A DNA stretch of 27,326 nucleotides from Ascoidea asiatica JCM 7603 (GCA_001600695.1 BCKQ01000008.1:134454-161779), one strand, 5' to 3'. Positions 1 to 27,326 are shown, counted from the stretch's first letter. Made by a program: numbers and translations. The notes: generated by a model not told the origin, from the sequence alone.

Positions 1-438
1 TACTTTCCAAATTATCTCCTTGTAATACTTGTTTTTTAATAGTTTCTAAATTCTCACTGCCGATTAATCCTGCTCTTCTTAATGCATCCCATAATTCTTC
101 ATCTGTACTACCATCAAATGGATCTAAATTTTTCTTAATTGTACCTCTAAACAAAACTGGATCTTGTGGAATAATACTTAATTTACTTCTTAAATCTTTT
201 AATCCAATCTTGGAAATATCAATATCATCAATTAATATTCTTCCATTACTTAATTCACTTAATCTATATAATGCTGTCATTATACTGGATTTTCCTGCAC
301 CTGTTCTACCACAAATTCCAACTTTTTCAGACCCTTTGATATTAAATGTTAAATTTTTTAAAACCAATGGTAATCCTTCTCTATATCTAAGATCTGCTTC
401 TTCAAATTTAAGTGATCCAGTAATTGGCCAATTTTCAT
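1..438. repeat. Left arm of a perfect 438-bp inverted repeat (partner 26889-27326)
   Basis: Line-by-line comparison shows 1-438 equals the reverse complement of 26889-27326 (i+j=27327). The first mismatch is at 439/26888. Shadow ORFs 210..491(+) and 26833..27117(-) translate identically over this span. Confidence 0.98.
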
Positions 439-3400
439 TAGGTATCATTGAATTAAAATTATATGATTTTTCTTCTTGTGGTAAATCATAAGCATAATGA
501 ATTATTCTTTCAATTGCATTCATTTCATTTTCAACTTGAGTAATAGATTTAACAACAAGTGGTAATATACCTGCTATATAAATTATATTACTTAATAATA
601 ATCCTGTTGATGATGCACTAATTTTAAATTCTCCTGTAATACAAAGTATTGAAATTATTAATGTTATTGTAGTTGTAATAATATTTAAATTAACACCTAA
701 CCATCTTTGTGTTGAAACAACTACATAATATGCTTCATTCATTAAATTTATATTCTCTTCAATTTTTTTTGAAAAATCTTCAATAACTTTATATGCTTTA
801 ATTGTATCTTTACCTGAAAGACTTTCATTAAAATTATTATAAACTAATGATCTATTTAATGCTTCTAATCTTTTAATTTCTCTTGCTGATGCTTGATAAA
901 ATGAACTTATACATATAAATAATATTATTAAAAAAAATAATCCAATGCCAAACCATGGTAAATAAATTATACATAAAATTAGTGATCCAATGAAATTAAG
1001 TGTATAAACTAATGCTAATCTTAATTGTTCTCCAAGTTCATTATCAATACTATCTGTATCTTTTGTAAATCTATTAAGAATTCTACCCATTGGGGTTGTA
1101 TCAATATATGACATTGGTGAATATAATATTTTTTCAATTGCCTTTATTATTAAATTTCTTGCTGCAATATTATTAACATATAATATCATGATAAAACATC
1201 CAGTTACTGATATTATACGAAAAAATACTAAAATAACATAGATTCCAATGTAAATATTATTTGAAATTGAAAATTTTTTTCCTGTCCAAAATGATAACCA
1301 AGTATTCAAGAAAATATATGTAAATGTTTGAAATAATAATAAAAAAATTAAAATTGGTAATGTTCTAAATTTGAAAATTCCTGATCCTGCTTTTATATAT
1401 CTTAAATAAACTTTTGAGGATATTTTATTTACTGCTCTTTCTTCTTCAACAATATGTCCATCTATTTGACTATTATGAAATCCATTAACTTTTTTCAAAT
1501 TTTTTTTATTTGATTCATTTTCTTCAATTATTTCAATAATTTCATCATTTTTGTTACTATTTTCATTATCAATAGTTAACTGAGTATTGAATGTCATCAA
1601 TTTAACAAAATCGGGACATTTGGATTTAACTTCTTCTAATGTACCTAATACAAGTCCACCTTTACCATCTAAGAATATAATTCTATCTGCATAATCAATT
1701 AATGATAATTGATGAGTGGCTAAGACTCTAGTTTTATGTTTTAAAGTCCCTAAGATACAATTTTTCATAATATATTCTCCAACTTTAGCATCAACTGCAC
1801 TTAAAACATCATCCATTAAAATAATATTTTTATCTTTAAAAACTGCTCTAGCTAAATTAATCCTAGCTTTTTGACCTCCTGATAAGGTAATACCTCTTTC
1901 ACCGATTTCAGTATTATCACCAGCTATCATTGATTGTAAATCTGGTTCCAAACAACATGATTTTATTACATTTTCATATTTAGTTTTATCAAATTTTTCT
2001 CCAAATAATATATTATCTTTTACAGATGCATTTTGAATCCATGGATATCCAGATAATAATAAAGAATCATTAATTTTCAAAATACCATTTTCTTTATTCA
2101 TCATTCCTGCTAAAGCAGATAATAATGAAGATTTTCCAGAACCAATGAATCCAGTTACAATAATAAATTCTCCCTTTTGAATATTTAAATTAATATTCAT
2201 TAAGCCTGGAAATGAAGATGAATCTATTTTTGAAGATTCAATTTCATTTTCTGAATTACTTTTATCAAATTGAATTTCGGATATAATAATCTTATCTTCA
2301 GGTTTTCCATTACTATTTAAGTTATTCCCATCTTTATTATTATTATCATCATCATTATTATTATCATCATTATCATTGATATTATTTTGATCAATTTGAA
2401 ATTTCTCATAAGAAGTTGAAGCCCATTTAAAATTTGCATCTTTAACTTGAATTGCCATATTTGAATCTAAAATAAAATTTGAAAATTTTTCTTGATTTAA
2501 TTCATTATTTGAATAAGAAATTTCTTCTTCTGAATTCAAAAATTCAATAACTCTTTCTAAAGCAATTTTTGCATCAATTCAAGTTGAAATTGAATTTGGA
2601 ATAATTGTAATTAATTCAGTAATAGTTTCAAATAAAGCAAGAGAAGAAAAAATACTTGCAGGATCATTATTATTATTATTAGTTTTAAAAATTGTGATAA
2701 ATGATAACATTGAAGAAATTGAAGGTGAAGAAGTTGCAATAGAAACAAAAAAACTTCTAATTAATTGAATTTTAAAAATTTGTTTTGATTCATTTTTTCT
2801 TGCATTAATAATTTTTTTTTTATATGGAATTTCCCAAGTACAATATTTTATCATTTTAATTGAATTTAAAATTTCTCTAATTACATTAATTCTTTTATCA
2901 GTAAATTTATTTGTTTTTTTTCTATAATTTATTAAAAGTTTTGATAAAAAAGTTGTTAAAATCATTGAGATTATAAAAAATCCAATACCAACTAATGAAG
3001 GTATTATACCAATATTTAAAATAATTAAAATTAAAGGTAAAATAATTATTGGTAAAGCAAAAATATATGGTTGAAGAGAAATAGCATAATCAATTCTTGA
3101 TAAATCAGTACCAATTAAAGAATTTATATAACCATTTGAAAATTTTAAATTTGAATTTAAATTTGAATTTAATTTAAAAGATTTGTCAAAAATTAATTTT
3201 GTTAAAATTGATTTAATTTGAATACCAATAATCATTGAATTAAAAAGTAAATGATTTTGAAAAATACCATTAAAGAAAATTAATAAAGTTAAAATAATTG
3301 AATAAATTAAACCATTTGAAATTTTTAAAGAATTATTAATTGATTTATTTGAAACAAAATTTATTAATATTTTAATAATTATTGGAGTTATTGAATCAAT

Positions 3401-3928
3401 TAAAAATGATAAAATTGAATAAATTATTGCTAAAATATATTTTTTTTTAAAAGTTTTAAATAAAGATATAATAAAAATTTTTAAATTAATTTTTTTTAAA
3501 TTTAATTGATTTGAATTTGAATTTATTTCATTAATTAAAATATTATTGAATTTTTTATATAAATAATTAATTTTTAAATCATTTGATAAATACCATAAAT
3601 CATTATTTGTTAAGGTTCTTTTATAACCAGTTAACATTATTGGATGTAACCACCAAAAGAAAATATAATTTAACCAACTACAATTATTCATTGGAATTTT
3701 TTTTCTTTCATCATTTGAAGGAATTGAAGGAACTTTTTTTGAAATAAAAATTGATAAAATATGATTTTGAAAAGAATATAAATTTTGATTTGGAGATTGA
3801 TTATTATAAATTTCAATATTATTTAATTTATTATAACCATTTTCAATATCATTTGAATAATTTTTTTCAATTTCATTATCTTCTTCATTTTGTTTATTAT
3901 TTGATTTAATTGAATGACATTTAACCAT
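1..3928 (-). pseudogene. YOR1: YOR1-like short-type ABCC transporter, copy L, interrupted by one in-frame TGA at 2581-2579 and truncated by the window edge in NBD2
   Basis: ORF 3928-2579 encodes the N-terminus and TMD1 (FFWWLHPIMLTGYKRTL, GTDLSRID). Manual translation past the TGA stays open to base 1: NBD1 Walker A GFIGSGKS, LSGGQKARINLARA, ILMDDVLSAVDA, TMD2 (DTTPMGRILNRFTKDTD) and NBD2 Walker A GRTGAGKS. Pseudogene status is inferred from the stop only. Confidence 0.85.
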
Positions 3929-4795
3929 TTTTTATATAATCACAATTTCAATTGAAGAAATAAATTTAAATTATATAAAAAGAGAAGGAATCTGAAGTAG
4001 ATATATACTGTATACTTTTCAGCTCATTATTCGACTACATCTTTTATTTTCTTTTTTCCTTTTTGAAATTTTTCTCTTTCTAACAGAATATCAAGTAATT
4101 CAAAGAATAATCCCATAAGCAATGAAAAAATATTATTAATTTCCTTTAAATTAATTGAGATTGATTTATTTCAAAAATTTAGAATGAGATAGTTGAATAA
4201 ATCGGTGGGTTTTTTCAATAATTTTATATGGAAATTGAGCCGGTTTAAAATTCGAAATTTTAAGTTTGGAGTTTTGAAATTATCATCTTTAAATCACTAA
4301 ATCATTGAATACTTAAACCATTGGAGTCTTTAGCTGAAATATATAAACATTTGGAATGTGAAGATTGTGAATTGATTGAGTATTATTTTAATTGATTTTA
4401 TTCTGCTTCTTTTGTTTGTTTATTTTCATTTTGCTTTGTGGCAGGCAGCGGAGTCTAAACAAAGGGACGGTGTCTGGTGAATACAGGGACAGATGTAGGG
4501 GCAAGGTTGCAAATATAGGACAATCAATTACGCCAGTTTTGTGGGACTTCTTTTAAACGGATTTAATAAAACCGTAGCGTGGATTGATATTTGAAGGATG
4601 CGGAAATGCATTGAAAACTTGAATGAAATATAATGAAATCTAACGAAATATAATAAAAGAATAAAAGAATGAAATAATGAAATAATCGAATATAATCGAG
4701 AATGAATATAAACTGGATATAGAATAGTCAAGTAGATAACTATTCACTACATAATATAGACTAATATATACTCAAATACAAAATACTTCAAGAAA

Positions 4796-5254
4796 ATGTC
4801 ATCTCGAGGTGGTCAAGCAGCTAAAAATGTATTAGTCAAACTAATAGTTGGTGCAGGAAAAGCTGCTCCATCTCCTCCTGTTGGTCCTGCTTTAGGTTCA
4901 AAAGGTGTAAAAGCAATTGATTTTTGTAAAGAATTTAATGCAAGAACTTCTAAATATACTGTAGATATACCAATACCAGTAATAATTACTATAAAACCAG
5001 ATAGATCTTTTAATTTTGAAATTAAATCTCCTTCAACTACTTATCTTTTAAAAAAAGCTTCTGGAATTGAAAAAGGTGCTGAAAAAGTAAATAAACTTGA
5101 AAATAAATTTATTGGTAAAATTTCTTTAAAACATATTTATGAAATTGCAAAAATTAAAAAAAGTGATCAAAGACATGAAAATTTACAATTACAAGGAATT
5201 TGTAAATCTGTTATTGCAACTGCTGATTCTATGGGTATTCAAGTTATTCCATAA
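4796..5254 (+). CDS. MRPL19: Mitochondrial ribosomal protein uL11m
   Basis: L11 motifs [51 protein letters not shown] and [13 protein letters not shown]. Confidence 0.95.
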
Positions 5255-5516
5255 TCATTATTCTTCAATTTCCAATAAACAACTTGTATATACCAATTTT
5301 TTTTTCATCTTTATATAATATAATTCTTAAATAAACTAATCATATATTTATTGTATTGTAATGTAATGTATTATATCGTATAAAAATTAATGAAAAAAGA
5401 AAAATCAAAAAAAAAAGAAAACTGTAGGAAAAGAGTAAACATTTAATAGAAAAAGTATAACTTAAAATTTATATAAAAATTTAAAATCAAAATAAACAAG
5501 TAAACAAACAAATAAA

Positions 5517-5544
<28 letters not shown>
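5517..5544. repeat. (TAAG)7 microsatellite in the convergent MRPL19/NPR1 3' region
   Basis: Read directly from the sequence. Confidence 0.9.
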
Positions 5545-5548
<4 letters not shown>

Positions 5549-5839
5549 TAAGTATATAAATAAACAAATAAATATATAAATAAATAGGTAGATGATCTTA
5601 AATAAAAAGTTAAATAGATTTGATAAATAATGAAAAAAAAATTTGGTTCACTAATAAAATAATGAATGAGTGATTTACTATTCACAATAAAAAAAATAAA
5701 TAAGTAAATAAATAAATAGATAATTGAAAAATGAAAAAAAAAGTTAATAAGTAATAATTATTATATATATAAATAATGAAATAATAAACTGCAAAGCAAA
5801 TTTATATGCAAAAATTCTAATTAAATTTAATTTCCCCTT

Positions 5840-8800
5840 TTATCTTCTACCATTATTTTTTTTTTTCTCTAAAAATGCAATATGAGCTTCAGTTTGATCA
5901 ACATGAGTATGCTCATGATTTTTACCTTTAATTAATTCTGGTAATGGAATTGTTCCAATATTAGAATATTTATTTGGTAAATTATAATATTCTGATTCTT
6001 CATCATAATGACACATTTCAATTGAATTTAACCATGAATCTTTAAAAATTTCATCAATATTACAACGACATGCTGGTGCTAATTCAACCATCTTACAAAC
6101 TAATGGTCTACAATATTCTGGTAATGCTAATAATAATCTATTTTCTCCTGTTATATTTGGTTTATGCATTTTTGATCCAATTCCTCCACCAGTATTATTA
6201 TTATTATTATTATTATTATTGTTGTTGTTGTTGTTGTTATTACTAACATTATTACTACTATTATGATGTCTTACTGATTGTGGTTTTGAATTTGAATTTG
6301 AATTTGAATGAGAATTAGAATTAGAATTAGAATTAGGAATTGCAGGTTGTGGTTTATTTTGAATTTGATTTTGAGAATGATGTGTTGAAGATTCTGGTGT
6401 TGTTAAAGGTGTTTCATTACTAGAATTATTTGATGAAGATCCTGATTTTTTATTACCTGATGATGATCCATTAAGTAAACTATCAATATTATCATGTTTA
6501 TGTGAAGGTATTTGAACTCCTTTATTTGATAATATTTGAACTTCTAAATCACTTGTACCTGATTTTATAGTTTCTAATGGTGTACCAACATTTGATTCAT
6601 GATATGATGGTGGTGGTGGAGATTTTTTTAATAATGAATTTAAAGTTTCTCCATTACCTCTTGTTGCAAACATTTTAAAAGATTGATCAGTTAATTTTGG
6701 TACTTTCCATGGAAATTTTCTTAACATCATACATGAAAAAATCATTGCTGCAGACCAAATATCAACAGCTCTTGGATCATATTTTTGAAATACAACGACT
6801 TCTGGTGCTAAATATGGATCTGATCCAACAATACCACTTGCTTCAATAATTTTTGAAGAAAATGGATATGAAAATACAACTGAAGAACCAAAATCAATAA
6901 TTTTTAATATACCATTTTTCATTATACAACAATTATCTAATTTTAAATCTCGATGAGCTAAACCTAAATGATGTAAATATCTTATACCAGATAATAATTG
7001 TTTAAAACAACAATTAATTTCATCCACAGACATTTTACCAGACATAACAATTGCAAATAAATCATAATCACAATATTCCATAACTTGATAAATTTTATCA
7101 TTTTCATAACAAATTTCAACAGTTTCAATAATATTTTGATGATTTAATGTTGAACCAATACAATATTCACCAGTAATTTTTTTTGTATATTCTCTTTTAC
7201 TTTCATTTGTAAATCTTGATCTAAATTCTTTTACAGCAAATAATCTTTTATCATAAATTCTTTTAATTAATTTTACATTACCACCAGCACCAGCACCTAA
7301 AGATTCACCAACTTTACCATATCTTTTTGAAAATGGTAAAATTTGTTGTTGATGTTGAATAATTTTATCTTGATTTGGATTAATATATTGATTAGCATAA
7401 GATTCTGGATTATTATTAATAAGATTATTATTAGTTGCTAAAGATCTTGCGGAAGAAACACTTGGAGAATAATTAATTTGTGGAGAAGATGATTGATTTG
7501 AAGTATCTAAATAATTATTGAAATGATTATTATTTGAATTTTTTTTAAAAAATCTTTTTAAATCAGCCATTGAAGAATGTCTTGAGAATGAAAAAGATCT
7601 TTTTGAATCTGCAATTGATCTTGTATCATTTGTATAACTATTATCCATATTATTTATAGGAGAATTTGAATTACTATTATTATTAATATTATTATTATTA
7701 TTATTATTTGAAGGAGAATTATTATATAATTGAGACATATCAACAGAAGAAGATTTTCTTGAAGATCTCGAAAAAAAATTAACTAAAGAAGAATGAGAAG
7801 CAGATCTTGAATTATGATTAATAATATTTATATTTGAATTACTATGATTATTATTATTATTATTATTTAAAGGAAATTGATTTGTCAGTAAAAGATCTTT
7901 ATCATTATTATCAAAAGAATTTGAAATTGAATTTGAATTTGAATTTGAGATTGAATTTGAAATTGAGAAATTTAAATTACTTGAAGAATAAGATTGATGA
8001 ATTGAATTAATTTTTTGTTTAGTTATAATAAATCTTGAATCTATTGAATTTGTATCTAAAACTTTTGGAGAAGTTATTTGATTTGTATTAATTATATTAC
8101 CATTTGAGGGTAAATCTAGATTATATAAAGAATTATTATCAGATTTTTGAATTGAAGTTGAAGTTGAAGTTTTATTATTATTATTGGTGTTGTTATTATT
8201 ATTATTATCAGAAATATTTATATTAATATTATTTTTAATTGAATTATCAATTTTATTATTTGAATAAGGTATTGAATATGGTAAATTAGTTGATAAAGGA
8301 GAAGAAGAATAAAAATTTAAAGAAGAATTTGATTTTTTTATTGATCTTTTATTAATTAATTGATTATTACTTGTAGTATAATTATTATTACTATTATTAT
8401 TTAAATTATTGTTTAAATTATTATTATTACTATTATTATTATTTGTTATTATTATATTTTTAGTATATAGTTTATTATTATTGTTATTATTAGTACTGTA
8501 ATTAATATTTATTGATTGATTATTATTTGAGGAAATAACTTTTGATGGAACCTTTGATGGAATTTTTGTTGGAATCTTTGAAGAAACTTTTGAATTTAAT
8601 TTTTCTTTTAAAGTTGATTTTGTATTGTTATTATTATTATTAATGTTCTTATTTTTATTTAAATTTTTGATTTTGATTTTATTTTTTAAATTTAAATTCA
8701 AAGAAGAATTTGATTTTTTATGTACATTGTTATTGTTATTGTTATTGTTATTGTTATTGTTATCTATATCATTATCATTATCGATATCATTATTTGAATC

Positions 8801-8926
8801 TATTGAGATTGTAGTTGTTATTATATTATTATTTATATTACTATTACTTATATTATTAGATATATTATTTTCTTTGATTAATCTTGTTAAGGAAGAAACA
8901 GATTGAGTTTTGATTTCAGTTGACAT
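5840..8926 (-). CDS. NPR1: Nitrogen permease reactivator Ser/Thr kinase (Npr1/Prr2 family) with a long Asn/Ser-rich N-terminus
   Basis: Kinase motifs [30 protein letters not shown] and [12 protein letters not shown]. The N-terminal SSLTRL and C-terminal [18 protein letters not shown] match Npr1 termini as I recall them. It is adjacent to MRPL19, as in S. cerevisiae. Confidence 0.92.
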
Positions 8927-9543
8927 TATTAAATTAGATATTATATATTAATTAGGGATATTAGAAATTAGATATTAGATATTCTAGTATATTATATTTA
9001 AATATTATAAGTATAATGTATGATATATGATATATGATAGATATAATGTATAATATATAATAGTAAGTGGTCTTATAGATTATAGATTATAATTATACTG
9101 TAGATAAGAAATTTTAAGTGAATAAAAAATGAAAATAGTGTCAATTTTGAGAATTAATAAGAATAAGAATAGGAATATAAATGATAGAAGTTATAAATTT
9201 TATAAAAAAGATAAATAGAATATCATAATATATTCGATATTGATATTGATATTGATATGTTTATTTTATTCTATTTTAATTTGATTGATAATTGATATTT
9301 TGATATTTTGATAATCTAAAGTTATAAGAGTAGCAATTTGAAATTTATATAAGGAGAATGATTATTTTGATATAGTATTATAGCAATATTTGATTAATAG
9401 AAATTAATATCCATTATTTTGAAATCAATGTTTATAATTTCACATTCAATATTTTATATAATCTATTTTGTAATTGATATATTTGATTATCTTTACAGTC
9501 TTTGCTGTTTTTATTATCTTGTTTAATATATTTGATATTTGAT

Positions 9544-9603
9544 ATATTTGATATTATATTTGATATTATATTTGATATTATATTTGATATTATATTTGAT
9601 ATT
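9544..9603. repeat. 12-bp minisatellite (ATATTTGATATT)x5 upstream of NPR1
   Basis: Five perfect tandem copies read directly. Confidence 0.9.
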
Positions 9604-9639
9604 CAGTATTTAATAGGTGATTTGGAGTATTTGATAGGT

Positions 9640-10330
9640 GACTGCCGTTCTTGGTTAGTTAACAGTAGCAGAGGAGTAGTACTAAAGGCAGTGTTTGTCG
9701 GCGTGGGAGCGAGAATGAGCAGCGAGAATTGAGAAAACAAAGCAACAGGAGCAAATGGCTCTGGGACAGGATCGGCACCAGCACGCACCAGCCACTGGCA
9801 AGCAGTGCACCGGCAGCAGCAGGCAAGTCACGGTCACGTGCTATTATATTCTATTGAAATTCCGGAACTGTTACCTCGGATATTGGCCAGTGCTGTACCA
9901 GCATATTATTCCCCGGTGATGTCCCTGTAAAACACAGAATTCACCACGACATCCAAGCTAACATACCTGCCAATACACGTATTTCCCGGCAGAGCACCAG
10001 CCCTGTTCCTTTTTGAGCAGTATTCAATTGCTTCATTGTTGCTGACAACTCGGTGTGTTCACCCGCCGCTTTCTTGGCCAGCTGAAACTGCCTCACTGCA
10101 AACAAGGGCGCACCGGGACAAACCACTGAATGAACCAGGACATTTCAAGACACTCTCTGCTCGGAGCACTTCCCGGTTGGGCAATCTTGCAACCACACTC
10201 CGAAAGCTGCGCACACGTTGCCGGCAGCCAATCAGCACGCCGTGCCAGCTTCCGGCGATTGCAGACGGCGTGTGCCTTCTTCTGATTCGTCACTCCCGGC
10301 TCTTTTTTCTTATCGCGCATCACCAAACCT
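9640..10330. promoter_or_regulatory. GC-rich intergenic island, probable NPR1 upstream regulatory region, containing GTCACGTG at 9833-9840
   Basis: Abrupt GC rise against the AT-rich background, many CGG/CCG triplets and a bHLH (Cbf1-type) E-box. The function is inferred. Confidence 0.45.
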
Positions 10331-10617
10331 TGATTCCAGAAGCTTCGTTTCACTTTTTTTTTCTTTTCTTTTCTTTCTTTCTTTCTTTCTTTCTTTGCTG
10401 CTACAAACCTTCCAAAGGAGTCCCAAATTTCTGGTCTCTTTTGAGTTTTTAAAAAAATTACACTGCATACAAACAGTTTACTCTAACACGACCCTGCATT
10501 ATCCCAATTAGGAAATTCGTACTTTTCTTCTCTTATATCCATTTATTCATTCATTTTTATTCTTATATATTTTATAATTAAAAAAAAAAACCCCATTGAT
10601 CGAAACTTTTTAAACCA

Positions 10618-12765: not shown

Positions 12766-12862
12766 TGATAATTTTGTATTTTGTATTTAGTATTTAGTAT
12801 TTAGTTTAGTTATTAGTTGATAGTATTGATTATAATTTGATATTATTATGGAATATATAGTG

Positions 12863-12888
12863 ATATATATATATATATATATATATAT
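12863..12888. repeat. (AT)13 microsatellite upstream of the orphan gene
   Basis: Read directly from the sequence. Confidence 0.9.
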
Positions 12889-13617: not shown

Positions 13618-13678
13618 AAACGCACTTTCAGACGCTGTTTAACACGCTTTTATTAACGCACTTCAACACGCACCTTTA
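13618..13678. repeat. Degenerate 12-bp tandem array with an invariant ACGC core (5 units)
   Basis: ACGC starts at 13620, 13632, 13644, 13656 and 13668. Confidence 0.8.
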
Positions 13679-14483: not shown

Positions 14484-17400
14484 ATGGCTTTAAAAAAATT
14501 CAAAATTAAAAGTAATCATGAAAATAATAATGAAATTGATAATGAAAATAATAATGAAAGAAATAATGAAAATCAAAATAAGAAAAAATTGAAAAAATTA
14601 AATAATTATGATATAAATATAGAATTATATAATCTTAGTATGAATTATCTGACTGAATTAAATGATTCAAATAATTTAAATAATCAAAATAATAGAAATA
14701 GTAGAATAAGTATACTATCAAATAATATTACCAATAATAATAATAATAATAATAGTAATAATATTATTAATCTTAGTAATAGTAATATTAATAACCTAAA
14801 TAATATTAATAGAAATAGTTTTATATATTTAAATCCAAATTCAAATAAAAGAAATACTCTGAATGCTTTGAAAGAATTAGAAATAAATACTTTTTCTGCA
14901 AATTCTTCTTCTTCTTCTCTACACAATGAAACTAATAACGATAACAATAATAATAACAATAATACTGATAATCCTTTTATTGAAATCTATACTCCAACCT
15001 CAACTTCCAATCCTCATTCAAATTCATTTTATATGAAAAATGATATTGAAAATAATTTAAATTCAAATAATGATGTAACTATTTATGATAATCAAAATTC
15101 TATATCTCCAATACCTCAATTTCAAAAACATATTTTATCTTTATTTATGTCAAAAAAAGTTCCTTCAATTCCTTCAAATGATGAAAGAAAAAAAATCCCA
15201 ATGAATACTTGTAATTGGTTAAGTTATTTATTCTTTTGGTGGTTACATCCAATAATGTTAACAGGTTATAAAAGAACCTTGACAAATAATGATTTATGGT
15301 ATTTATCTGAAGATTTAAAAATTAATACTATTTATCAAAAATTTAATCAAATTTTAATTAATAAATTAAATTCAGAAGAAAATCCTAAAAGACTTACTGT
15401 AAATATTTTATGTTTATCATTATATAAAACTTTTCAAAAAAGATATATAATTGCGACAATATGTTGTCTTTGTTCTCAAACGATAGGTTCATTATCTCCT
15501 TTATTAGTTAAACAATTAATAGCTTTTATAGAAAGTAGAACTTATGATAATTCAATAAAAATTAATAATGGTTTAGCTTATTCAATTGCTTCTTCATTTT
15601 TAATTTTTTTAAATGGTTTATTATTTAATCATTTTTTCTTTAATTCAATGATTGTTGGAATTCAAGTTAAATCTTTATTGACTAAATTAATTTTTGATAA
15701 ATCTTTTAAATTAAATTTAAATTCAAGATTAAAATTTTCTGACGGTGATATAACCTCATTAATGGGTACTGATCTTTCAAGAATTGATTTAGCTATTGGT
15801 TTACAACCAATAATTTTTTCATTCCCAATAATTATAATTCCATTAGCTTTATTAATTCATAATATTGGTACACCTTCATTAGTTGGAGTTGGATTATTTT
15901 TAACTGTAACTTTTTCATTATCTTTTTTAACTGGTTTATTAATTAGATATAGAAAAATTGCAACTGAATTTACTGATAAAAGAATAAATACAATTAGAGA
16001 AATTTTAAATTCAATTAAAATGATTAAATATTATACTTGGGAAATTCCATATGAAAATAAAATTAAAGATATAAGAGAAAAAGAAACCAAAGCTTTATTT
16101 AAAATTCAATTAGTTAGAAGTTTTTTTTTAGCAATTGCAGAAACTTTACCAACAATGTCTGCGATGTTATCTTTTATTACCGTTTATAAAACTAATAGTA
16201 AAGGTCAAGATCCTGCAAGTATATTTTCTTCTCTTTCTTTATTTGACCAATTAGCCTCTTTAATAATTATGGTACCAAGTGCTATTGCAACTTCTGTAGA
16301 TGCTAAATTAGGAATGGGTAGAGTTGTTGAATTTTTAAATGCTGAGGAAGATAATATTGATGAGAATTTAGAAATCGAAGAAGAAAGAAAAAATTTATTT
16401 CAACTTGATACTAATATGGCAATTCAAGTTAAAAATGCAACTTTTAAATGGAAAATAAATAAATTAAATGAAAATAATGAACAGGAAACTGAAACAAGTT
16501 CTCATAATAGTATTAGTAATGGAAATGGTAGTGAAAACAATGATGATAATAAAAATGAAAAAACTCATAAAAAAGATTTTACTTTAACATCAGATTGCGT
16601 TTCTCCGGTAAGTAAACTTTCAAATAATGAAATACAACTCGATGATGATGATGACGATGATAGAAATACAATCAAGGTTGATCCAAATCAAAATCCATTT
16701 GTCGACCCTTCTAATTTTCCAGGATTAGTCAATGTGAATCTTAATATTAGAAAAGGAGAGTTTATAATTGTTACTGGATTCATTGGCTGTGGAAAATCTT
16801 CATTATTATCAGCATTGTCTGGGTTTATGGAAAAAGAAGAAGGTGTTTTGAAAATCAATGATTCTATGTTATTATGTGGATATCCATGGATTCAAAATGC
16901 AACAATTAAAGATAATATTCTATTCGGTCAAGATTATAATGAAAAAAAATATAAGAAAATTTTAAATGCATGTGCTTTAACTTCAGATCTTAATAGTTTT
17001 CCAGCTGGTGATAATACTGAAATTGGTGAAAGAGGTATAACATTATCAGGAGGTCAAAAAGCTAGAATTAATTTAGCTAGAGCTGTTTATAATGATAAAA
17101 GTATTATATTATTAGATGACGTTTTAAGTGCGGTTGATGCTAAAGTAGGAAGACATATAATGCAATATTGTATATTTGGATTATTAAAACATAAAACTAG
17201 AATTTTAGCAACTCATCAGTTATCATTAATTGATTATGCAGATAGAATTATATTTTTAAAAGGAGACGGAAATTTAATTTGTGGAACAGAAGATGAGATT
17301 AAAAGTTCCTGTCCGGATTTTGTTCAATTGATGACATATGCACAAGAAGCACAAACTGAAGAAGTTGATTCTAACAATTATAATAATGATTACGATGGTG

Positions 17401-19370
17401 ATGATAATGAAGATAAGAAATTTGATCATTTGAATGAAACTGAGGAAGAACAAAAATTCGAGAATGAGAATGAAAATTCCAATGATGGACATATAGTTGA
17501 AGATGAAGAAAGAGCTGTTAATAAAATTTCTCCTAAAATATATTTAAGATATATTAAAGCGGGATCAGGGGTATTTAAATGGTTTGCAATACCATTTTTA
17601 TCAATTCTTGTTGCAATTGAAACATTTTGTGAAGTTTTTACCAATACATGGTTATCATTTTGGACAGGAAATAAATTTGGATTATCAGATAATGTATATA
17701 TTGGAGTTTATGTTTTATTTACATTCACTTTTACAATATCAGCAGCAGGATTTTTTGTAATGATATTATATATATCAAATACAGCTGCAAAAAATTTGAT
17801 TTTAAAAGCAGTTAGTAGAGTTTTACATTCACCAATGTCATTTATGGATACAACACCAATGGGTAGAATTCTTAATAGATTTACAAAAGATACAGATGCT
17901 ATTGATAATGAAATCAGTGAACAATTGAGAATGTTATTAATGGGAATTTCCCAATTAATTGGAGTTATAATATTATGTGTAGTTTATTTACCATGGTTTG
18001 GACTTGCATTACCAGTAATGGGAGTTGTTTTTATTTGTATGACATCATTTTATCAAGCCTCAGGTAGAGAAATTAAGAGACTAGAAGCATTAAATAGATC
18101 ATTAGTTTATAATAATTTCAATGAAGGGCTTTCAGGTAAGGATACAATTAAAGCATATAAAGTTTTTGAGAATTTTTCATCAAAAAATGAAAAAAAAATA
18201 GATTGTATGAATGAAGCATATTATGTAGTTGTTTCAACACAAAGATGGTTAGGTATAAATCTAAATATTATTGCAACAAGTTTTTCATTTATAATTTCAA
18301 TACTTTGTGTAAGTAAGAAATTTTCAATAAATGCGTCATCAGCTGGATTATTATTAAGTAATACAATTGGTATAACGGGATTAGTTTCTATGGTTGTTAA
18401 ATCTTTAACACAAGTTGAAAATGAAATGAACGCAGTTGAAAGAATTATTTATTATGCATATGATTTAATTGTTGAAAAAAAATATGAAATTATTGAAAGA
18501 AAACCTGAAAGTAATTGGCCAAGATTTGGACAAATTAGTTTTGAAAATGTTTCATTGAATTATAGAGATGGATTACCATTAGTTTTAAAAGATTTAAGTT
18601 TTAAAATTAAGCCATTTGAAAAAATTGGAATTTGTGGTAGAACAGGAGCAGGAAAGTCAAGTATTATGACGGCATTATATAGATTAAATGAATTAAAAGA
18701 AGGTATAATCAGAATAGATGGATTAGATATTTCAAAGATTGGATTGAAAGATTTAAGAAGTAAATTAAGTATTATACCACAAGATCCAATTTTGTTTAAA
18801 GGTACCATTCGAGAAAATTTAGATCCATTCAATATAAATACAGATGAAGAGCTATGGGATGCATTAAGAAGATCGGATTTAATTGATGAAGAAATTTTAG
18901 AAAATGTTAAAAGGCAAGCAATAGCAATTGAGAATAACCATAATCAAGAAAATGAAACTGGTAATGAGAACTTAAAAGATGAAAATAAGAATCTTCACAA
19001 ATTTCATTTAGATCAACAAGTTGAAGATGAAGGAAGTAACTTTTCCTTAGGAGAAAAGCAATTATTAGCATTAGCTAGAGCATTAGTACGTAATTCAAAG
19101 ATACTAATATTGGATGAAGCTACATCCAGTGTTGATTATGAAACCGATTCTAAGATTCAAAATACTATTAAAACCGAATTCAAAGATTGTACAATATTGT
19201 GTATTGCTCATAGATTAAGAACCATCTTAAACTATGATAGAATTTTGGTTTTAGAAAAAGGTGAAATTGAAGAATTTGGTAAACCTATAAAGCTTTATAA
19301 TAATGAGGATAGTATATTCCGAGATATGTGTAACAAACTAAACATTGAAGAAAAGGATTTCAATCTCTAA
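14484..19370 (+). CDS. YOR1: YOR1-like ABCC (MRP/CFTR family, no TMD0) multidrug transporter, copy M, complete
   Basis: TMD1-NBD1-TMD2-NBD2 architecture. NBD1: GFIGCGKS, LSGGQ, ILLDD. NBD2: GRTGAGKS, FSLGEKQ, LILDEATSSVDYETD, IAHRL. Also MGTDLSRIDLAIG. It is a paralogue rather than necessarily the orthologue. Confidence 0.93.
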   Translation: MALKKFKIKSNHENNNEIDNENNNERNNENQNKKKLKKLNNYDINIELYNLSMNYLTELNDSNNLNNQNNRNSRISILSNNITNNNNNNNSNNIINLSNSNINNLNNINRNSFIYLNPNSNKRNTLNALKELEINTFSANSSSSSLHNETNNDNNNNNNNTDNPFIEIYTPTSTSNPHSNSFYMKNDIENNLNSNNDVTIYDNQNSISPIPQFQKHILSLFMSKKVPSIPSNDERKKIPMNTCNWLSYLFFWWLHPIMLTGYKRTLTNNDLWYLSEDLKINTIYQKFNQILINKLNSEENPKRLTVNILCLSLYKTFQKRYIIATICCLCSQTIGSLSPLLVKQLIAFIESRTYDNSIKINNGLAYSIASSFLIFLNGLLFNHFFFNSMIVGIQVKSLLTKLIFDKSFKLNLNSRLKFSDGDITSLMGTDLSRIDLAIGLQPIIFSFPIIIIPLALLIHNIGTPSLVGVGLFLTVTFSLSFLTGLLIRYRKIATEFTDKRINTIREILNSIKMIKYYTWEIPYENKIKDIREKETKALFKIQLVRSFFLAIAETLPTMSAMLSFITVYKTNSKGQDPASIFSSLSLFDQLASLIIMVPSAIATSVDAKLGMGRVVEFLNAEEDNIDENLEIEEERKNLFQLDTNMAIQVKNATFKWKINKLNENNEQETETSSHNSISNGNGSENNDDNKNEKTHKKDFTLTSDCVSPVSKLSNNEIQLDDDDDDDRNTIKVDPNQNPFVDPSNFPGLVNVNLNIRKGEFIIVTGFIGCGKSSLLSALSGFMEKEEGVLKINDSMLLCGYPWIQNATIKDNILFGQDYNEKKYKKILNACALTSDLNSFPAGDNTEIGERGITLSGGQKARINLARAVYNDKSIILLDDVLSAVDAKVGRHIMQYCIFGLLKHKTRILATHQLSLIDYADRIIFLKGDGNLICGTEDEIKSSCPDFVQLMTYAQEAQTEEVDSNNYNNDYDGDDNEDKKFDHLNETEEEQKFENENENSNDGHIVEDEERAVNKISPKIYLRYIKAGSGVFKWFAIPFLSILVAIETFCEVFTNTWLSFWTGNKFGLSDNVYIGVYVLFTFTFTISAAGFFVMILYISNTAAKNLILKAVSRVLHSPMSFMDTTPMGRILNRFTKDTDAIDNEISEQLRMLLMGISQLIGVIILCVVYLPWFGLALPVMGVVFICMTSFYQASGREIKRLEALNRSLVYNNFNEGLSGKDTIKAYKVFENFSSKNEKKIDCMNEAYYVVVSTQRWLGINLNIIATSFSFIISILCVSKKFSINASSAGLLLSNTIGITGLVSMVVKSLTQVENEMNAVERIIYYAYDLIVEKKYEIIERKPESNWPRFGQISFENVSLNYRDGLPLVLKDLSFKIKPFEKIGICGRTGAGKSSIMTALYRLNELKEGIIRIDGLDISKIGLKDLRSKLSIIPQDPILFKGTIRENLDPFNINTDEELWDALRRSDLIDEEILENVKRQAIAIENNHNQENETGNENLKDENKNLHKFHLDQQVEDEGSNFSLGEKQLLALARALVRNSKILILDEATSSVDYETDSKIQNTIKTEFKDCTILCIAHRLRTILNYDRILVLEKGEIEEFGKPIKLYNNEDSIFRDMCNKLNIEEKDFNL

Positions 19371-19514
19371 GACTCATGATAATGGGGTTATTGTAAAATA
19401 ATATAGTCTTCAAGTTATTTGAATCTTCTGTAAAGTAAAATAAATATATTTCAAGTACCATGAATATAAAGTTATCTGGATATCACCAAAAGGACCCTTT
19501 ATTGGAAGCTAACC

Positions 19515-19940
19515 TGAAGCATTACGTAATTGCTTTTTTCAATTTTTTTTGAATTGCGATTTTATTCCGTTCTCCGGAAACCGCTGAAAACAAAATAATC
19601 CTTACTTTCCGGTTAAATCATGTTTGTCCGGCCAGTCCAGTGTGTCCGAATTACCCGAAGTGTCCGTGTGGCCCACGTCAGGCAGCCAGACAAAACTGTG
19701 CATACGCCGCCGTGGCTGTGCAGCTCTTGTCCGTCTCCAATTTCAGCTTGTCCTAAGCCACCCTGGTCTGCCATATCACTCGCCACATTCCCACTACCAC
19801 TTGCCACTTCCTCTCCTGAGGCTCGAGTAAAGTGCACCAGTGCGCCACAGTTAAGTCACTGTCCAGTCACTGTTCTGTCTCTGTTTACGCGTTGTTTACC
19901 CAGCGGCCATTGTGTGATTTCATCTCTGCCGGCTTTGACT
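19515..19940. promoter_or_regulatory. GC-rich island upstream of the PLB gene with ATTACGTAAT palindrome (19521-19530) and TGTCCG x4
   Basis: TGTCCG at 19625, 19643, 19661 and 19728, plus a bZIP-type palindrome. The function is inferred. Confidence 0.45.
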
Positions 19941-20556
19941 GTTATTTACCAATCCATCAGTCTGCTAGAATAAACACTTCTTTCTTTCTAGATCTCTAAT
20001 AATTTAGCATTTTATTACTTTTATAATTTGGGTTTATTTGGTACAATTCCTTAACGAGATATCGGTTTCAAGCTCAAATAGGAGCATTAGATTTGTAGAG
20101 ATACTAATTAATGAAATAATAATAATAATAAAAATAATAAAAATAATAATGAAATATAAAGAAATAAGAATAAAAACTATAGATTTGGAATAATTTATTC
20201 TCCTAATTCCCTTTTAGACCTTTTATTTCTCTGTTTCTCCAATGATTTTCACCATAGCCAGTGGCTTTAAGTAAAGAAAAGAATCTCACATCTAATTACT
20301 TTTCTTACTCTATTTTTCCTTTTTATTCCAATTATAAAAGAAACTTCAAATCAACCTCTTTTTTTTTTGTTTTTTTTTTGTCAACATTGATTATTAGTAA
20401 TATATATCTTACTATATCCATAATAATTTATTATATATAATCATATATATAAATATAATTAATCAATTATATTTCTCTATAATCAATATTTCATATAAAT
20501 TATAATCATAATTGAAAATATATAAATAGAAATAGAAATAGAGTAGAAATATAAAA

Positions 20557-22536
20557 ATGATAACGTTAAATTCAAAAATTTTATTCATTTTTTCATCAAT
20601 TTTTTTAATAATATCTCAAATTAAAATTGTTAATTCTTGGTCACCAACAAATTCTTATGCTCCAGGTAAAATAACTTGTCCATCAAATTCAAAAACTTCT
20701 TCAAATTCAACTTCAATTTATGGTAAAACCAATGGTTTTTTAAGAAATTCTTCATATATAAGTAATAATGAATATTCTTGGTTACAAAAAAGAAATATAA
20801 CAACTTTATCAAATTTAAAAAAATTCTTTAATTATAATACAAAATTATCAAATCAATCTGATTTTAATATAGATTCTTTTTTTGAACAATTAACTGATAA
20901 TGAATCAATAATTATTGGAACTGCTTTTTCTGGTGGCGGTTATAGAGCAATGTTAGCAGGTGCTGGTGAATTATCTGCTTTAGATAATAATACTGTTGGA
21001 GCTTTTGAATATGGTTTAGGTGGTTTACTTGAATCTTCAACTTATATTTCTGGTTTATCTGGTGGTAATTGGTTAACTGGTACTTTAATTATGAATAATT
21101 GGACAAATATTCAATCTTTAATTAATCAAGATTCTATTTGGAATTTAGAGCATTCAATTTTTTCTTCTGGTGGTATAAATATTTTTTCAACTGTTTCTAC
21201 CTGGGATGATATATCTGATGAAATTGATGATAAAAGAGATGCAGGTTATGAAGTTTCTTTAACTGATGCTTGGGGTAGAGCATTATCAAGACAATTTTTC
21301 ACAAATTTATCTGATTATGAATATGGTGCTCCATTAACTTGGTCAACTTTAAGAGATTCTTCAGTTTTTCAAAATGCTGAAATGCCATTTCCATTTTCTG
21401 TTGCTGATGGTAGAGCTCCTGGTACTCAAATTATTAATTTAAATTCAACAGTTTTTGAAATTAATCCTTTTGAAATTGGATCTTGGGATCCTTCTGTACA
21501 TTCATTTTTTGATATTAAATATCTTGGTACAAATGTTACAAACGGTAAAGTAAATGATTCTGAATGTATTGCAGGTTTTGATAATGCTGGGTTTATAATG
21601 GGTACTTCATCTTCATTATTTAATCAATTTTTATTACAATTAAATACAACTGGTTTAACAGGTGTATTATATGATTTAATTCAAGATTTTTTAACTGATC
21701 TTGATGAAGATGATAATGATATTGCTGTTTATGATCCAAATCCATTTTATCAATCTGAATTTGGTACTTCAGATAGTGTTGCAGATGCTTCATATCTTTA
21801 TTTAGTTGATGGTGGTGAAGATAATCAAAATGTTCCATTAGCTCCATTAATTAGACCTGAAAGATATGTTGATGTAGTTTTTGCATTTGATAATAGTGCA
21901 GATACTGATGAAAATTGGCCAAATGGTTCTTCATTAGCTTATACATATTCAAGACAATTTACAACTCAAGGTAATGGAACTGCATTTCCATATGTACCAG
22001 ATACTACAAGTTTTAGATCATTAAATTTATCTTCAAAACCAACATTTTTTGGTTGTGATTCAAGTAATTTAACTTCTTTAGGTAATATACCTCCATTAGT
22101 TGTTTATATTGCAAATAGACCATTTTCATATTGGTCAAATACTTCAACATATAAAATGTCATATGATGAAGATGAAAAATTAGGTATGTTTGAAAATGGT
22201 TTTGAAGTAACTTCAAGAAATAATTTAACTTTAGATGAAAATTGGCCAACATGTGTTGCATGTGCAATAATGAGAAGAACTCAAGAAAGAAATAATGATA
22301 CACAACCTGATATTTGTAAAGAATGTTTTGATGAATATTGTTGGAATGGAGATTATTCAACTGCAACTCCTGGTATAAATTTTACAATGAATGGTACAAC
22401 TTCTGGTGATGAAGATACTGGTAATGAAACAAGTAATGCAATTTCATTATTCTGGAAAAATAATAAAGACTCAAATGGTTATAATTATTTAAAATATTTT
22501 TCTATTGTGTTTTTAACTATTGCTTTATTGTTTTAA
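20557..22536 (+). CDS. PLB1: Phospholipase B / lysophospholipase (PLB1/PLB3-like), secreted and probably GPI-anchored
   Basis: N-terminal signal peptide followed by WSPTNSYAP. Catalytic motifs SGGGYRAML, GLSGG and LVDGGED, and a hydrophobic C-terminus. The exact PLB paralogue is uncertain. Confidence 0.92.
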   Translation: MITLNSKILFIFSSIFLIISQIKIVNSWSPTNSYAPGKITCPSNSKTSSNSTSIYGKTNGFLRNSSYISNNEYSWLQKRNITTLSNLKKFFNYNTKLSNQSDFNIDSFFEQLTDNESIIIGTAFSGGGYRAMLAGAGELSALDNNTVGAFEYGLGGLLESSTYISGLSGGNWLTGTLIMNNWTNIQSLINQDSIWNLEHSIFSSGGINIFSTVSTWDDISDEIDDKRDAGYEVSLTDAWGRALSRQFFTNLSDYEYGAPLTWSTLRDSSVFQNAEMPFPFSVADGRAPGTQIINLNSTVFEINPFEIGSWDPSVHSFFDIKYLGTNVTNGKVNDSECIAGFDNAGFIMGTSSSLFNQFLLQLNTTGLTGVLYDLIQDFLTDLDEDDNDIAVYDPNPFYQSEFGTSDSVADASYLYLVDGGEDNQNVPLAPLIRPERYVDVVFAFDNSADTDENWPNGSSLAYTYSRQFTTQGNGTAFPYVPDTTSFRSLNLSSKPTFFGCDSSNLTSLGNIPPLVVYIANRPFSYWSNTSTYKMSYDEDEKLGMFENGFEVTSRNNLTLDENWPTCVACAIMRRTQERNNDTQPDICKECFDEYCWNGDYSTATPGINFTMNGTTSGDEDTGNETSNAISLFWKNNKDSNGYNYLKYFSIVFLTIALLF

Positions 22537-22599
22537 TAATTTTTTAAATAAAATTTAGTACATATTTTTGTTAGTTTATCTTTGTTTTCAAATTCGGAG

Positions 22600-22965
22600 G
22601 TCATTATTTCCATAAATGGAATCCCGAGATGAATGCCGGTCGATCTAACCAAAAGCCGTCGGCAATTCAACATAAGTTATTGAGATTTCAATATTAAATT
22701 GGCGTGCCAAATCCGCCTGTGGTTTCCGTGTGTTCCCCGTCGGGCGGGTACGGTACACAGCTGATCATTCCCGTTGAAATAGCCGTCGGAAATAGCCTTT
22801 CCGTGCGGTTGGGACCAAAGCTTCCCGCATCCGCCCCTGTTCCGCATCCGCCTGCTCTCTTTTTGAGCCTCCAAAGCGCCCCGGACTTAAGATTGTTTTG
22901 AGAGACTGCCCCGTTTTGCTCTGCTTCTGCAGTGTTTCTTATGTAATCCGCTTATTACTAATGAC
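22600..22965 (+). promoter_or_regulatory. GC-rich UAS-like region of YOR1 copy R with CCGTCGG x3, CCGCATCCGCC x2 and TTACTAA
   Basis: CCGTCGG at 22656, 22737 and 22783. CCGTGCGG at 22801. CCGCATCCGCC at 22825 and 22842. Yap1-type TTACTAA at 22955-22961. Confidence 0.55.
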
Positions 22966-23263
22966 TTTTCAGTAGTTAAACATTGATTATTTAATGATTT
23001 AAAATTGTTTTTCGTTGTGCAAGAAGAACGGCTTTAAGTTTTCCCAGATTATGGAAGCAAAAGTCTTAAAATTGAATAATATTTGAATATTTACGAAGGA
23101 AACTGATTTCATCAGTTTTACTGAAGTATAAATATTGATTTATTTGTCTTATTTGTAATTTTGATTGGAATCTTGAATTTGGAATTAGAATCAGAATTAG
23201 AATTTAATTTTGGATTAGGATTCGATTGTCTTTGATAAGAATAATAATAAAAATATATCGAAT

Positions 23264-23305
23264 ATGTCAGATTCAACAAAATCTGTATCTTTATCTTCCA
23301 GTTCC

Positions 23306-23363
<58 letters not shown>

Positions 23364-26300
23364 GTAGTTCAAAAAAAAATGATGAGATTATCACAAAAAA
23401 TCCAATTGATTCTCATTTAAATGATGATTCAAATTTAAAAAAACAACAAGGTTTAGATGTTTCAAATATTGAATCTTTCAATTTAAAAAAACAAAAACAT
23501 CTATTATCTTTTTTATTTTCAAATAATATACCTCCAATTCCTTTAGAAGATGAAAGAAAAAAATTTCCAATGAATTCAATCGCCAAAAGAAATATACTAT
23601 CATATATTTGTTTTTGGTGGTTACATCCAATAATGAAAGTTGGTTATAAAAGAACTTTACAAAATAATGATTTATGGTATTTATCAGAAGATTTAAAAAT
23701 TGATACAATTTATAATACTTTTAAAAAAAATTTAACCGAATCTTTAGATAAAAAAAGAGCACAATTTTTATTAAAAGTTGAAAAAGATCCAAATTTCAAA
23801 GATAAAAAAAATTTATCTGATGATGAAATCATTGAAGAAATTTGGGATAATTATTTAATTATTAAAGTTTTATTTAAAACTTTTAGAAAAAGATATATGG
23901 CTGCAGTTTTTATAAAATGCCTTTCTGATGTTGGTTTTTCAACTAATCCTTTAATTACAAAAGAATTAATAAAATTCGTTGAATTAAAATCAATAAATTC
24001 TTCACTACCAATTAATAAAGGTATTGGTTATTCTTTTGGTGCTTCTTTAGTAATATTTGTTTCTGGTGTTTTAATTAATCATTTTTTTCATAATTCAATG
24101 ACTGTTGGTTTACAAGTTAAAGCTGTATTAACAAAAGCAATATTTGATAAATCTTTCAAACTTGATTCAAAGGCAAAACATAATTATCCAACTGGTAAAA
24201 TAACTTCATTAATGGGTACTGATTTAGCTAGAATTGATTTAGCTATTGGTTTTCAACCACTTGTTTTATCTTTTCCAGTTTCTGTAATAATTTGCATAGC
24301 TTTATTAATTCATAATATTGGTGCTCCTGCTTTATCAGGTATTGGTTTATTTATTGTTTCAATTGTTGTTATATCTTATTGTTCTTCATTTCTTTTACAA
24401 TTTAGAGTTAAAGCAAATAAATGGACTGATTTAAGAGTTGGTTCTATTAGAGAAATCTTAAATTCAATGAAAATGATTAAATTTTATGCTTGGGAACTGC
24501 CATATAAAGATCAAGTTGCAAATAGAAGAAATAAAGAAATGAATATAATTTTTAAAATGCAATTTTTAAGAAATTTATTTGTATCTTATGGTATTTCTTT
24601 ACCAACTTTATCTTCAATGTTAGCATTTATTGTTGTTTTCAAAACAAGCTCTGGTAAAAGTGCTGCTGATGTTTTTTCTTCAGTTTCTTTATTTAATACT
24701 TTAGCTCAACAAGTTATGATGTTACCAATGGCTTTAGCTTCATCAATGGATGCTATTGTTGGTTTAAAAAGAGTTAATGATTTTTTAAAATCAACAGAAG
24801 AAAAAGATACTACTGAAATTGAATTAATTGAAGAAAAACATTTAAACTTCACTAAAGATGATTCAATGGCTATTCAATTAAGAAATGCTACTTTTAAATG
24901 GGAACAATTTGATAGAGAAGATCAAGATAACGACAATGATAATGATGATGATAAAGATAATGAAAAAAAATCTAATAATAAACATAATAAATTAGAATTA
25001 CAGAAAACTTTATCAAGAAAACTTACAAGATATTCAACAATCCCAGAAAATCAAATTATTGATCCTTCAACTTTCAAAGGCTTACTTGATATCAATTTAG
25101 ATATCAAAAAGGGTGAATTTATTATTATTACTGGTCTTATTGGTTCTGGAAAATCCTCTTTATTGTCTGCTTTAGCAGGAATGATGAATAAAGAAAATGG
25201 TATTTTGAAAATCAACGATTCTTTATTATTATGTGGTTATCCATGGGTTCAAAATGCAACTGTCAAAGAAAATATTGTATTCGGTGAAGAATTTGATGAA
25301 CAAAAATATAAAAATATTATCAATTCTTGTGCTTTAAGCGCAGATCTTGCAGTATTGCCAGCTGGTGATAATACTGAAATTGGTGAAAGAGGTATAACAT
25401 TATCCGGGGGTCAAAAAGCTAGAATTAATTTAGCAAGAGCTGTTTATAATGATAAAAATATCATTCTATTAGATGATGTTTTAAGTGCAGTTGATGCAAG
25501 AGTTGGAAAACAAATTATGACTGAATGTTTAATGGGGTTACTTAAAGATAAAACAAGAGTCTTAGCCACTCATCAATTATCACTAATTGATTATGCAGAT
25601 AGAATCATTTTCTTAGATGGTAAAGGTGGACTTGTATGTGGTTCATTAGAAGAAGTTAGATCTAAATGTCCAGAATTTGTTGATTTAATGGAATATAGTG
25701 CAGAATCGCAAAAAGATGAATCTGATGATGAGGAGGCATCAATATTTGATGAAAAAAATATAGAAAAAGAATCAGTTTTTAATAAATCTAGAACTATGAC
25801 CAGATCAAGTGAATTTGATCAAAATGAAGAAAAAAATAATGAAGAATTCAAAAGTAGTACAGTTGATGGTCATTTAGTTGAAGAAGAAGATAGAGCTGTA
25901 AATAAAATTTCCTGGGATGTTTATAAACATTATATTCAAATGGGGTCAGGAGCTTTTAGACTAACATCAATTCCACTATTAATATTACTTTGTTCATTAG
26001 CAATATTTTCAAATTTATTCACATCAACATGGTTATCATTTTGGACAGACGATAAATTTGATTTACCAACAAATACATATATTGGAATTTATGTTATGAT
26101 GGCATTCTGTTATGTTATTTTTACAACATTATTTTTTACAATGCTTCTTTATATTACCAACACCGCTGCAAGAAAATTAAATGTTGCAGCAGTTGAAAAA
26201 GTTTTACATGCCCCAATGTCATATATTGATACAACACCACTAGGTAGAATACTTAATAGATTTACAAAAGATACAGATAGTCTTGATAATGAAATTGGAG

Positions 26301-27326
26301 ATCAATTAAGGTTGTTCATTTTCCCATTAGCACAAGTTGTTGGAGTTTTAATATTATGTATAATTTATTTACCATGGTTTGCAATCGCAATACCTGGATT
26401 AGTATTTATATATATATCAATTTCATCATATTATCAAGCAGCTGCAAGAGAAGTTAAGAGATTAGAAGCATTGAATAGATCTTTAGTTTATAATAATTTC
26501 AATGAATGTTTAGAAGGTGTTAATACAATCAAAGCATATAATGCAACTGATAGATTTAAAGTTAAAAATGTTAAATTAATTGATACAATGAATGAAGCAT
26601 ATTATATTACAATTTGTAATCAAAGATGGTTATCAATTCATCTTGATATGGTTGCAGGGGCATTTGCATTATTAATTTCATTACTTTGTGTTACAAGACA
26701 ATTCAATATAAATGCATCATCAGTTGGATTATTATTATCGTATGTTTTACAAATTGCAGGATTATTATCAATGTTAGTTAGATCAATGACACAAGTGGAA
26801 AATGAAATGAATTCAGTTGAAAGATTAGCATATTATGCATATGATTTACCACAGGAAGCACCATATTTGATTAGTTCAACAAAACCTGATGAAAATTGGC
26901 CAATTACTGGATCACTTAAATTTGAAGAAGCAGATCTTAGATATAGAGAAGGATTACCATTGGTTTTAAAAAATTTAACATTTAATATCAAAGGGTCTGA
27001 AAAAGTTGGAATTTGTGGTAGAACAGGTGCAGGAAAATCCAGTATAATGACAGCATTATATAGATTAAGTGAATTAAGTAATGGAAGAATATTAATTGAT
27101 GATATTGATATTTCCAAGATTGGATTAAAAGATTTAAGAAGTAAATTAAGTATTATTCCACAAGATCCAGTTTTGTTTAGAGGTACAATTAAGAAAAATT
27201 TAGATCCATTTGATGGTAGTACAGATGAAGAATTATGGGATGCATTAAGAAGAGCAGGATTAATCGGCAGTGAGAATTTAGAAACTATTAAAAAACAAGT
27301 ATTACAAGGAGATAATTTGGAAAGTA
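23264..27326 (+). CDS. YOR1: YOR1 ABCC transporter, copy R (most canonical), 3'-truncated by the window edge in NBD2
   Basis: The first in-frame ATG after an upstream TAG is at 23264 (MSDSTKSV...). Motifs: FWWLHPIMKVGYKRTL, MGTDLARIDLAIGFQP, KMIKFYAWE, GLIGSGKS, LSGGQ, NQRWLSIHLD, VRSMTQVENEMNSVERL and GRTGAGKS. It is missing from the ORF track, consistent with no stop before the edge. Confidence 0.93.
23306..23362 (+). repeat. (AAT)19 poly-Asn microsatellite in the N-terminus of copy R
   Basis: Read directly from the sequence. Confidence 0.92.
26889..27326. repeat. Right arm of the perfect 438-bp inverted repeat (partner 1-438)
   Basis: Exact reverse complement of 1-438. Confidence 0.98.

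Follow-up and report, generated by a model that had tools for sequence, protein, structure and literature searches.

The window analyzed here, a stretch of 27,326 nucleotides from Ascoidea asiatica JCM 7603, begins and ends inside two outward-facing ABC transporter genes, and comparison within it identifies positions 1-438 as an exact inverted copy, letter for letter, of positions 26889-27326. This raises the question of how two diverged genes come to share such a sequence, and whether the segment between the copies changes orientation. A preliminary description proposed an invertible "transporter switch", with gene conversion or a contig ending in the repeat as plainer explanations.

Gene content and extent of the repeat

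The best matches of the transporter paralogs are annotated YOR1 proteins (62-69%), and NBD2 fits ABCC structures. Paralog L occupies 1..3928 on the minus strand (1433 codons, with its stop codon 373 bp to the left of the window and one in-frame TGA), and paralog R occupies 23264..27326 on the plus strand (intact, 1479 aa, ending at the window equivalent of 27703). Paralog M (14484..19370, plus strand) is intact, encodes 1628 aa and lies outside the long identical tract. The domain order is TMD1-NBD1-TMD2-NBD2, and L and R are both transcribed outward. R, L and M each contain two ABC_membrane and two ABC_tran domains, for L only if its stop is read as X. L belongs to a fast-evolving lineage and, judged by its membrane domains, is most closely related to M; R belongs to a slow lineage. 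The layout is that of Yor1-type ABCC transporters, but here there are three local paralogs from two lineages, one of which carries an in-frame stop.

Between L and M are MRPL19, encoding mitochondrial uL11 (4796..5254, plus strand; 75% identity to the A. rubescens protein), an NPR1-like protein kinase gene (5840..8926, minus strand) that is syntenic in A. rubescens and Pachysolen, and a 715-aa orphan without a Pfam domain (10618..12765, minus strand) that has a syntenic A. rubescens homolog. This homolog is 504 aa long and 39% identical over 314 aa, and in both species the orphan and a fast-lineage YOR1 are transcribed divergently. A phospholipase B gene (PLB, PF01735; 20557..22536, plus strand) follows M and is likewise found within the A. 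rubescens segment. The flanks are gene-dense, with the next ORFs about 0.5-1.6 kb from the L and R stops, and include an oxidoreductase gene whose best relative is from A. rubescens (66%). The nearest long ORF-free gap measures 7 kb and lies about 21 kb to the right of the window; the scaffold end is 134 kb away.

A motif scan of the whole window did not detect the canonical PDRE 8-mer. Three CCGTCGG heptamers occur upstream of R (window 22656, 22737 and 22783). These are three of only eight CCG-N-CGG occurrences in 267 kb, are absent from the A. rubescens region, and from their sequence are possible sites for a zinc-cluster factor. Of the words in window 1-5000, 96-98% occur in three public DNA runs; a corresponding RNA run is not listed. 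The species has been described as a heterothallic diploid (PMC6692504).

Other repeats are found nearby. A second inverted pair (C8:264441-264953 and 270672-271181, locus L029; C8 is the scaffold that contains the window) is 91% identical over 518 bp, including 272 identical bp, with arms 5.9 kb apart, and lies within an orphan family of which a diverged 155-aa relative directly follows R (L010:869-1336). To the left of the window is a family of secreted-looking proteins of 185-195 aa with no Pfam match (L011:7686-8243, L009:704-1261, L009:2617-3204 and L021:690-1510). Its members share identical direct tracts of 141, 103 and 79 bp and are interspersed with four near-identical tRNA-Ala(AGC) genes.

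The stop that had been noted in L is present in the assembly as a TGA at window 2579..2581 (minus strand). It lies at the end of TMD1, without a frameshift, 2.1 kb upstream of the arm. Approximately 6.7% of random point changes in the AT-rich L ORF would create a stop, and 860 of the 3324 bases aligned between L and M are different; thus selection acted on L until very recently, unless the stop is an allele or an error. A methionine 40 codons after the TGA opens a 943-aa frame spanning NBD1-TMD2-NBD2.

The window corresponds to C8:134454-161779, internal to a scaffold of 720,923 bp (20.3-Mb genome, 71 pieces) with unique flanks beyond both arms, so the repeat is not where a contig ends. The arms do share an end point as previously described, in that both window ends adjoin the same base of the repeat, but the repeat itself runs 255 bp further. 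A single N is found at C8:134453 and another at C8:161780, the same base of the two arms, and the arm end points coincide because the window was cut at this N. Including the continuation, the inverted repeat extends over 694 bp (438 bp, the N and 255 bp), located at C8:134198-134891 (L codons 1164-1395) and C8:161342-162035 (R codons 1209-1440, reaching the window equivalent of 27582). Further outward there are single mismatches at positions 257 and 293 and divergence from about position 343, so that the edge frays across ~85 further bases.

The repeat is wholly inside NBD2 of both genes. Its in-window part (1..438, minus strand, in L; 26889..27326, plus strand, in R) covers the NBD2 start, Walker A and the Q-loop, and the continuation past the N holds the signature motif, Walker B and the H-loop. 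As reported earlier, identity includes silent sites and begins at the first residues of NBD2, while the gene bodies just inside the arms are only 66-79% identical; the match is complete with the N site set aside. Chance is excluded by the 190 identical codons (p about 1e-20 at a 78% background for same-residue codons), and the L/R tract contains 126 consecutive identical informative sites (permutation p 0.0002). The spacer (439..26888, unstranded) is 26,450 bp and contains both promoters and both gene bodies, in agreement with the previous estimate of ~26.4 kb for the segment that would be inverted by a crossover in the repeat.

An equivalent repeat in Ascoidea rubescens

On A. rubescens scaffold KV454479.1, outward-facing YOR1 paralogs A and B bracket PLB, MRPL19, NPR1 and the orphan homolog. 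A and B share an inverted match of 611 positions (850633-851243 and 828279-828889, 21.7 kb apart) that consists of 360 identical bp, 142 N and 109 identical bp. The run of N is at an equal place in both arms and its length is exactly that predicted by the alignment. This run may be assembly ambiguity or masking, and identity is therefore seen only in the bases on either side of it. Relative to A. asiatica, the tract begins 38 codons further on, immediately ahead of Walker A, and ends 10 codons further on. A and B are full length (one at L019:3628-8028, the other in L020) and are missing from the called genes; a third copy, C, is called as 1014 aa within a frame of about 1400 aa.

The outer flanks of the segment are without synteny between the two species. 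In A. rubescens they consist of LRR genes, with PBR1-TIF6 on another scaffold, and the Saccharomycopsis region is rearranged. Gene order within the segment also differs between the species, and those breakpoints fall outside the repeat. Compared with A. rubescens, the MRPL19-NPR1-orphan block (within window 1-19370) is inverted relative to the slow-lineage YOR1, and PLB is turned relative to the same gene. One possibility is an old, duplication-linked inversion with L at one end and M at the other.

The ambiguous letters bear on whether the identity was produced by assembly, with one consensus written into both arms, which would either exaggerate their similarity or overwrite an NBD2 in L that is in fact diverged. 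Both species show ambiguity at the same place in the two arms, and inflated inverted repeats have been documented for another assembler (PMC6692504). The two N in A. asiatica are the only ambiguous letters in the 267 kb of C8 sampled, so the arms probably do differ at this site, a second codon position. The assembler would have collapsed the arms, met two letters at one site and been unable to assign them. However, collapse itself requires near-identity, and M, at 80-90% identity, was assembled apart. The arm junctions are in frame and homologous, a search of the genome for a stray fourth NBD2 found none, and the independent assembly of the second species shows the same pattern. We therefore regard an artefact as an improbable source of the repeat as a whole. 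Its mild form, with a few hidden differences between the arms, is likely, and its strong form is unlikely.

Probable homogenization of NBD2 within an old gene pair

The membrane domains and NBD2 give different trees. The membrane-domain tree groups R with A (support 85) and joins L and M to B and C as ((L,M),(B,C)) (support 100), and a grouping of L with R is rejected (AU p 2e-10). Because R groups with A, and L and M group with B and C, the YOR1 duplication is older than the Ascoidea species split. In the NBD2 tree L is instead identical to R, and A to B.

Silent sites follow the same division. Within the tract, L and R match at all 52 four-fold sites and A and B at all 42, compared with 8 of 26 for R and A. 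In the gene bodies the matches fall to 126 of 174 for L and R and to 76 of 199 for A and B. Between species the silent sites of the tract look saturated. Identity within each species combined with silent divergence between them implies that each lineage homogenised NBD2 recently and separately, and this in turn implies conversion as a continual process.

Similar arms could in principle arise without recombination between the paralogs, if a segment had been duplicated recently or if the protein were under very strong constraint. NBD2 is the most conserved domain, and M retains 76-98% amino acid identity across most of it. Against this, silent sites are identical as well, whereas 10 of the 41 four-fold sites differ in M, and the ORFs are old duplicates in the parts that flank the tract. 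The match at silent sites within paralogs of such age refutes recent duplication or constraint alone, and an account of this kind retains almost no credibility.

The features by which ectopic gene conversion between paralogs is recognized, a tract of silent-site identity and within-species closeness in that tract only, are both found here. Gene conversion, raised earlier as an alternative, is thus the best reading, with cross-species support from silent sites that match within species only. From these sequence comparisons, the tract is probably identical because an old YOR1 pair evolves in concert, with ectopic gene conversion confined to NBD2. Older, shorter tracts are seen in NBD1 between L and R (p 0.002) and between M and R (p 0.001; silent-site permutation, both uncorrected for multiple tests). 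M shares only 69 identical bp with both arms (window 19128-19196), and the third A. rubescens paralog shares an 80-bp tract. The NBD1 tree alone does not place L (AU p 0.35 and 0.49), and neither these tests nor the 38-codon comparison indicates the direction of conversion.

Several observations count against the conversion model. The identity rests on two assemblies, one per species, and the ambiguous letters at matching arm places in both are a sign of collapsed repeats. Additionally, M, which is a closer and also inverted sister of L, remains outside the long tract, and C is left out too.

Under the conversion model, an outward-facing YOR1 (ABCC) pair would have duplicated before the Ascoidea split and undergone continual ectopic conversion restricted to NBD2. 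A break in one NBD2 would be mended with the other copy as template, usually with no crossover, and tracts may end where the paralogs grow too different, in TMD2 on one side and in the tail on the other. If NBD2 is interchangeable between the pumps, conversion there would for that reason be tolerated and self-sustaining, whereas in the substrate-binding membrane domains divergence would prevent conversion or selection would remove it. Crossover may accompany a few per cent of events, and inversion of the 26-kb spacer would then be a by-product with almost no effect on fitness.

There is a published precedent for such homogenization. PMC6053246, citing Lamping et al. (2017), describes the Pichia kudriavzevii efflux paralogs ABC11 and ABC1 as kept alike by recurrent ectopic gene conversion, with chimeras; in both cases yeast ABC efflux paralogs are homogenised. 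The Pichia genes are tandem ABCG/PDR genes that are 98% identical overall, and crossovers between them consequently change copy number. The Ascoidea pair consists of inverted ABCC genes that are about 76% identical overall and converted in NBD2 only. For this reason crossovers in Ascoidea would invert the segment and swap short tails.

Possible inversion of the segment and its significance

A close comparison for the segment as a whole is the FF region of Saccharomyces chromosome XIV, which is also a non-MAT block, ~24 kb long, whose flanking inverted repeats are homogenised within each species. Inversion there is a by-product of gene conversion between the repeats, and orientation is stable in the laboratory (Salzberg et al. 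2022, PMC9731477). The Saccharomyces arms are 4.2 kb long and contain whole genes with promoters, their boundaries are conserved, and both orientations are documented (PMC9731477). In contrast, the Ascoidea arms are 0.6-0.7 kb, comprise one domain within two diverged genes, have species-specific boundaries, and are known in a single orientation from one assembly per species; searches with exact proteins for further assemblies of A. asiatica had no hit. A homogenised inverted repeat around the same block is nevertheless found in both Ascoidea species, as in regions of the FF type.

As an addition to gene conversion, it is possible, though on balance doubtful, that crossovers are frequent enough for the 26-kb segment to be a standing, unregulated inversion polymorphism among strains or homologs. 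The spacer is of a similar size class (22-26 kb compared with 24 kb in the FF region), the arms are homogenised in two species, and a flip would cost little. Approximately 4% of conversions resolve as crossovers (PMC9731477), and in a 6.5-kb inverted-repeat construct an inversion accompanied 1 of 50 repairs (PMC2731894); given these published rates, rare by-product inversions are expected. However, the arms are much shorter than 4.2 kb, and both scaffolds continue through the arms into unique flanks. The MRPL19-NPR1-PBR1 order is as in Pachysolen, which argues against flipping, but weakly, as local order is much rearranged.

Further evidence on this point comes from the gene tails. A crossover would exchange the 3' UTRs, as proposed, but the signature motif and Walker B are identical inside the repeat and would be unaffected. 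The L and R tails have 10 differences, all confined to the final ~21 residues, and their 3' UTRs are also distinct; the two 3' ends are therefore not the same, yet both are intact, and the earlier proviso that only one might be intact does not apply. A C-terminal D-x-E helps Yor1 traffic, and a D-F-E triplet is present in the tails of both L and R. The motif that follows the last helix has derived D and L residues in L, M and B, at positions where R, A and C have E and S; the outgroups mostly have Q and S. Because M is outside the repeat pair, it fixes the original pairing of body and tail, and both assemblies are in this unswapped state. Free flipping would give that result one time in four.

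A stronger proposal is that the segment undergoes a programmed or condition-induced flip/flop that alters efflux-pump function, in the manner of FF1 mating-type switching. FF1, as described for Ogataea polymorpha and A. rubescens (PMC6692504), is likewise a budding-yeast system, in which a single inverted repeat flanks a block tens of kb long. The A. rubescens MAT locus does have this system (PMC6692504), the YOR1 repeat is retained at an equivalent place in two species, and the L and R tails differ. However, the MAT arms in A. rubescens are 2 kb (PMC6692504), compared with 0.6-0.7 kb here, and no centromere or telomere is seen beside an arm. The gene-dense flanks and distant scaffold end leave no obvious silencing site. 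A Pfam scan of all long ORFs found only ABC, uL11, kinase and PLB domains and one orphan, with no MAT or recombinase gene, and the segment thus falls outside the mating-type definition of FF1.

Nor would a flip accomplish much. Every catalytic motif is inside the repeat, so almost nothing but 10 tail residues and the 3' UTR and flank would be exchanged, and the L stop lies too far upstream to be bypassed by any flip. As both genes are transcribed outward, a crossover leaves every promoter with its own gene body. Considering that the pairing is ancestral in both assemblies, that promoters flip with their genes and that the repeat boundaries differ between species, a regulated switch is very unlikely, and the present evidence includes none supporting a new one. 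An intermediate proposal, in which the intragenic repeat is old and genus-wide and inverts the 22-26 kb block in populations, the swap of tail and 3' UTR between a slow-lineage and a fast-lineage YOR1 altering pump location or level, is a long shot. If true, yeasts would have a second flip/flop outside MAT, and its crossovers would take place within a drug-pump gene.

What is peculiar to this locus is that a single domain makes up the repeat, that the two pumps carrying it are otherwise diverged, and that both species retain it. Concerted evolution by gene conversion would make it a clean two-species case in which the ATP-binding domain of two diverged efflux pumps is kept identical while their membrane domains diverge. 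The locus would also offer the FF-region model a second, easily PCR-typed site at which to ask whether homogenised inverted repeats flip yeast gene blocks, and whether 0.7 kb of homology suffices for by-product inversion.
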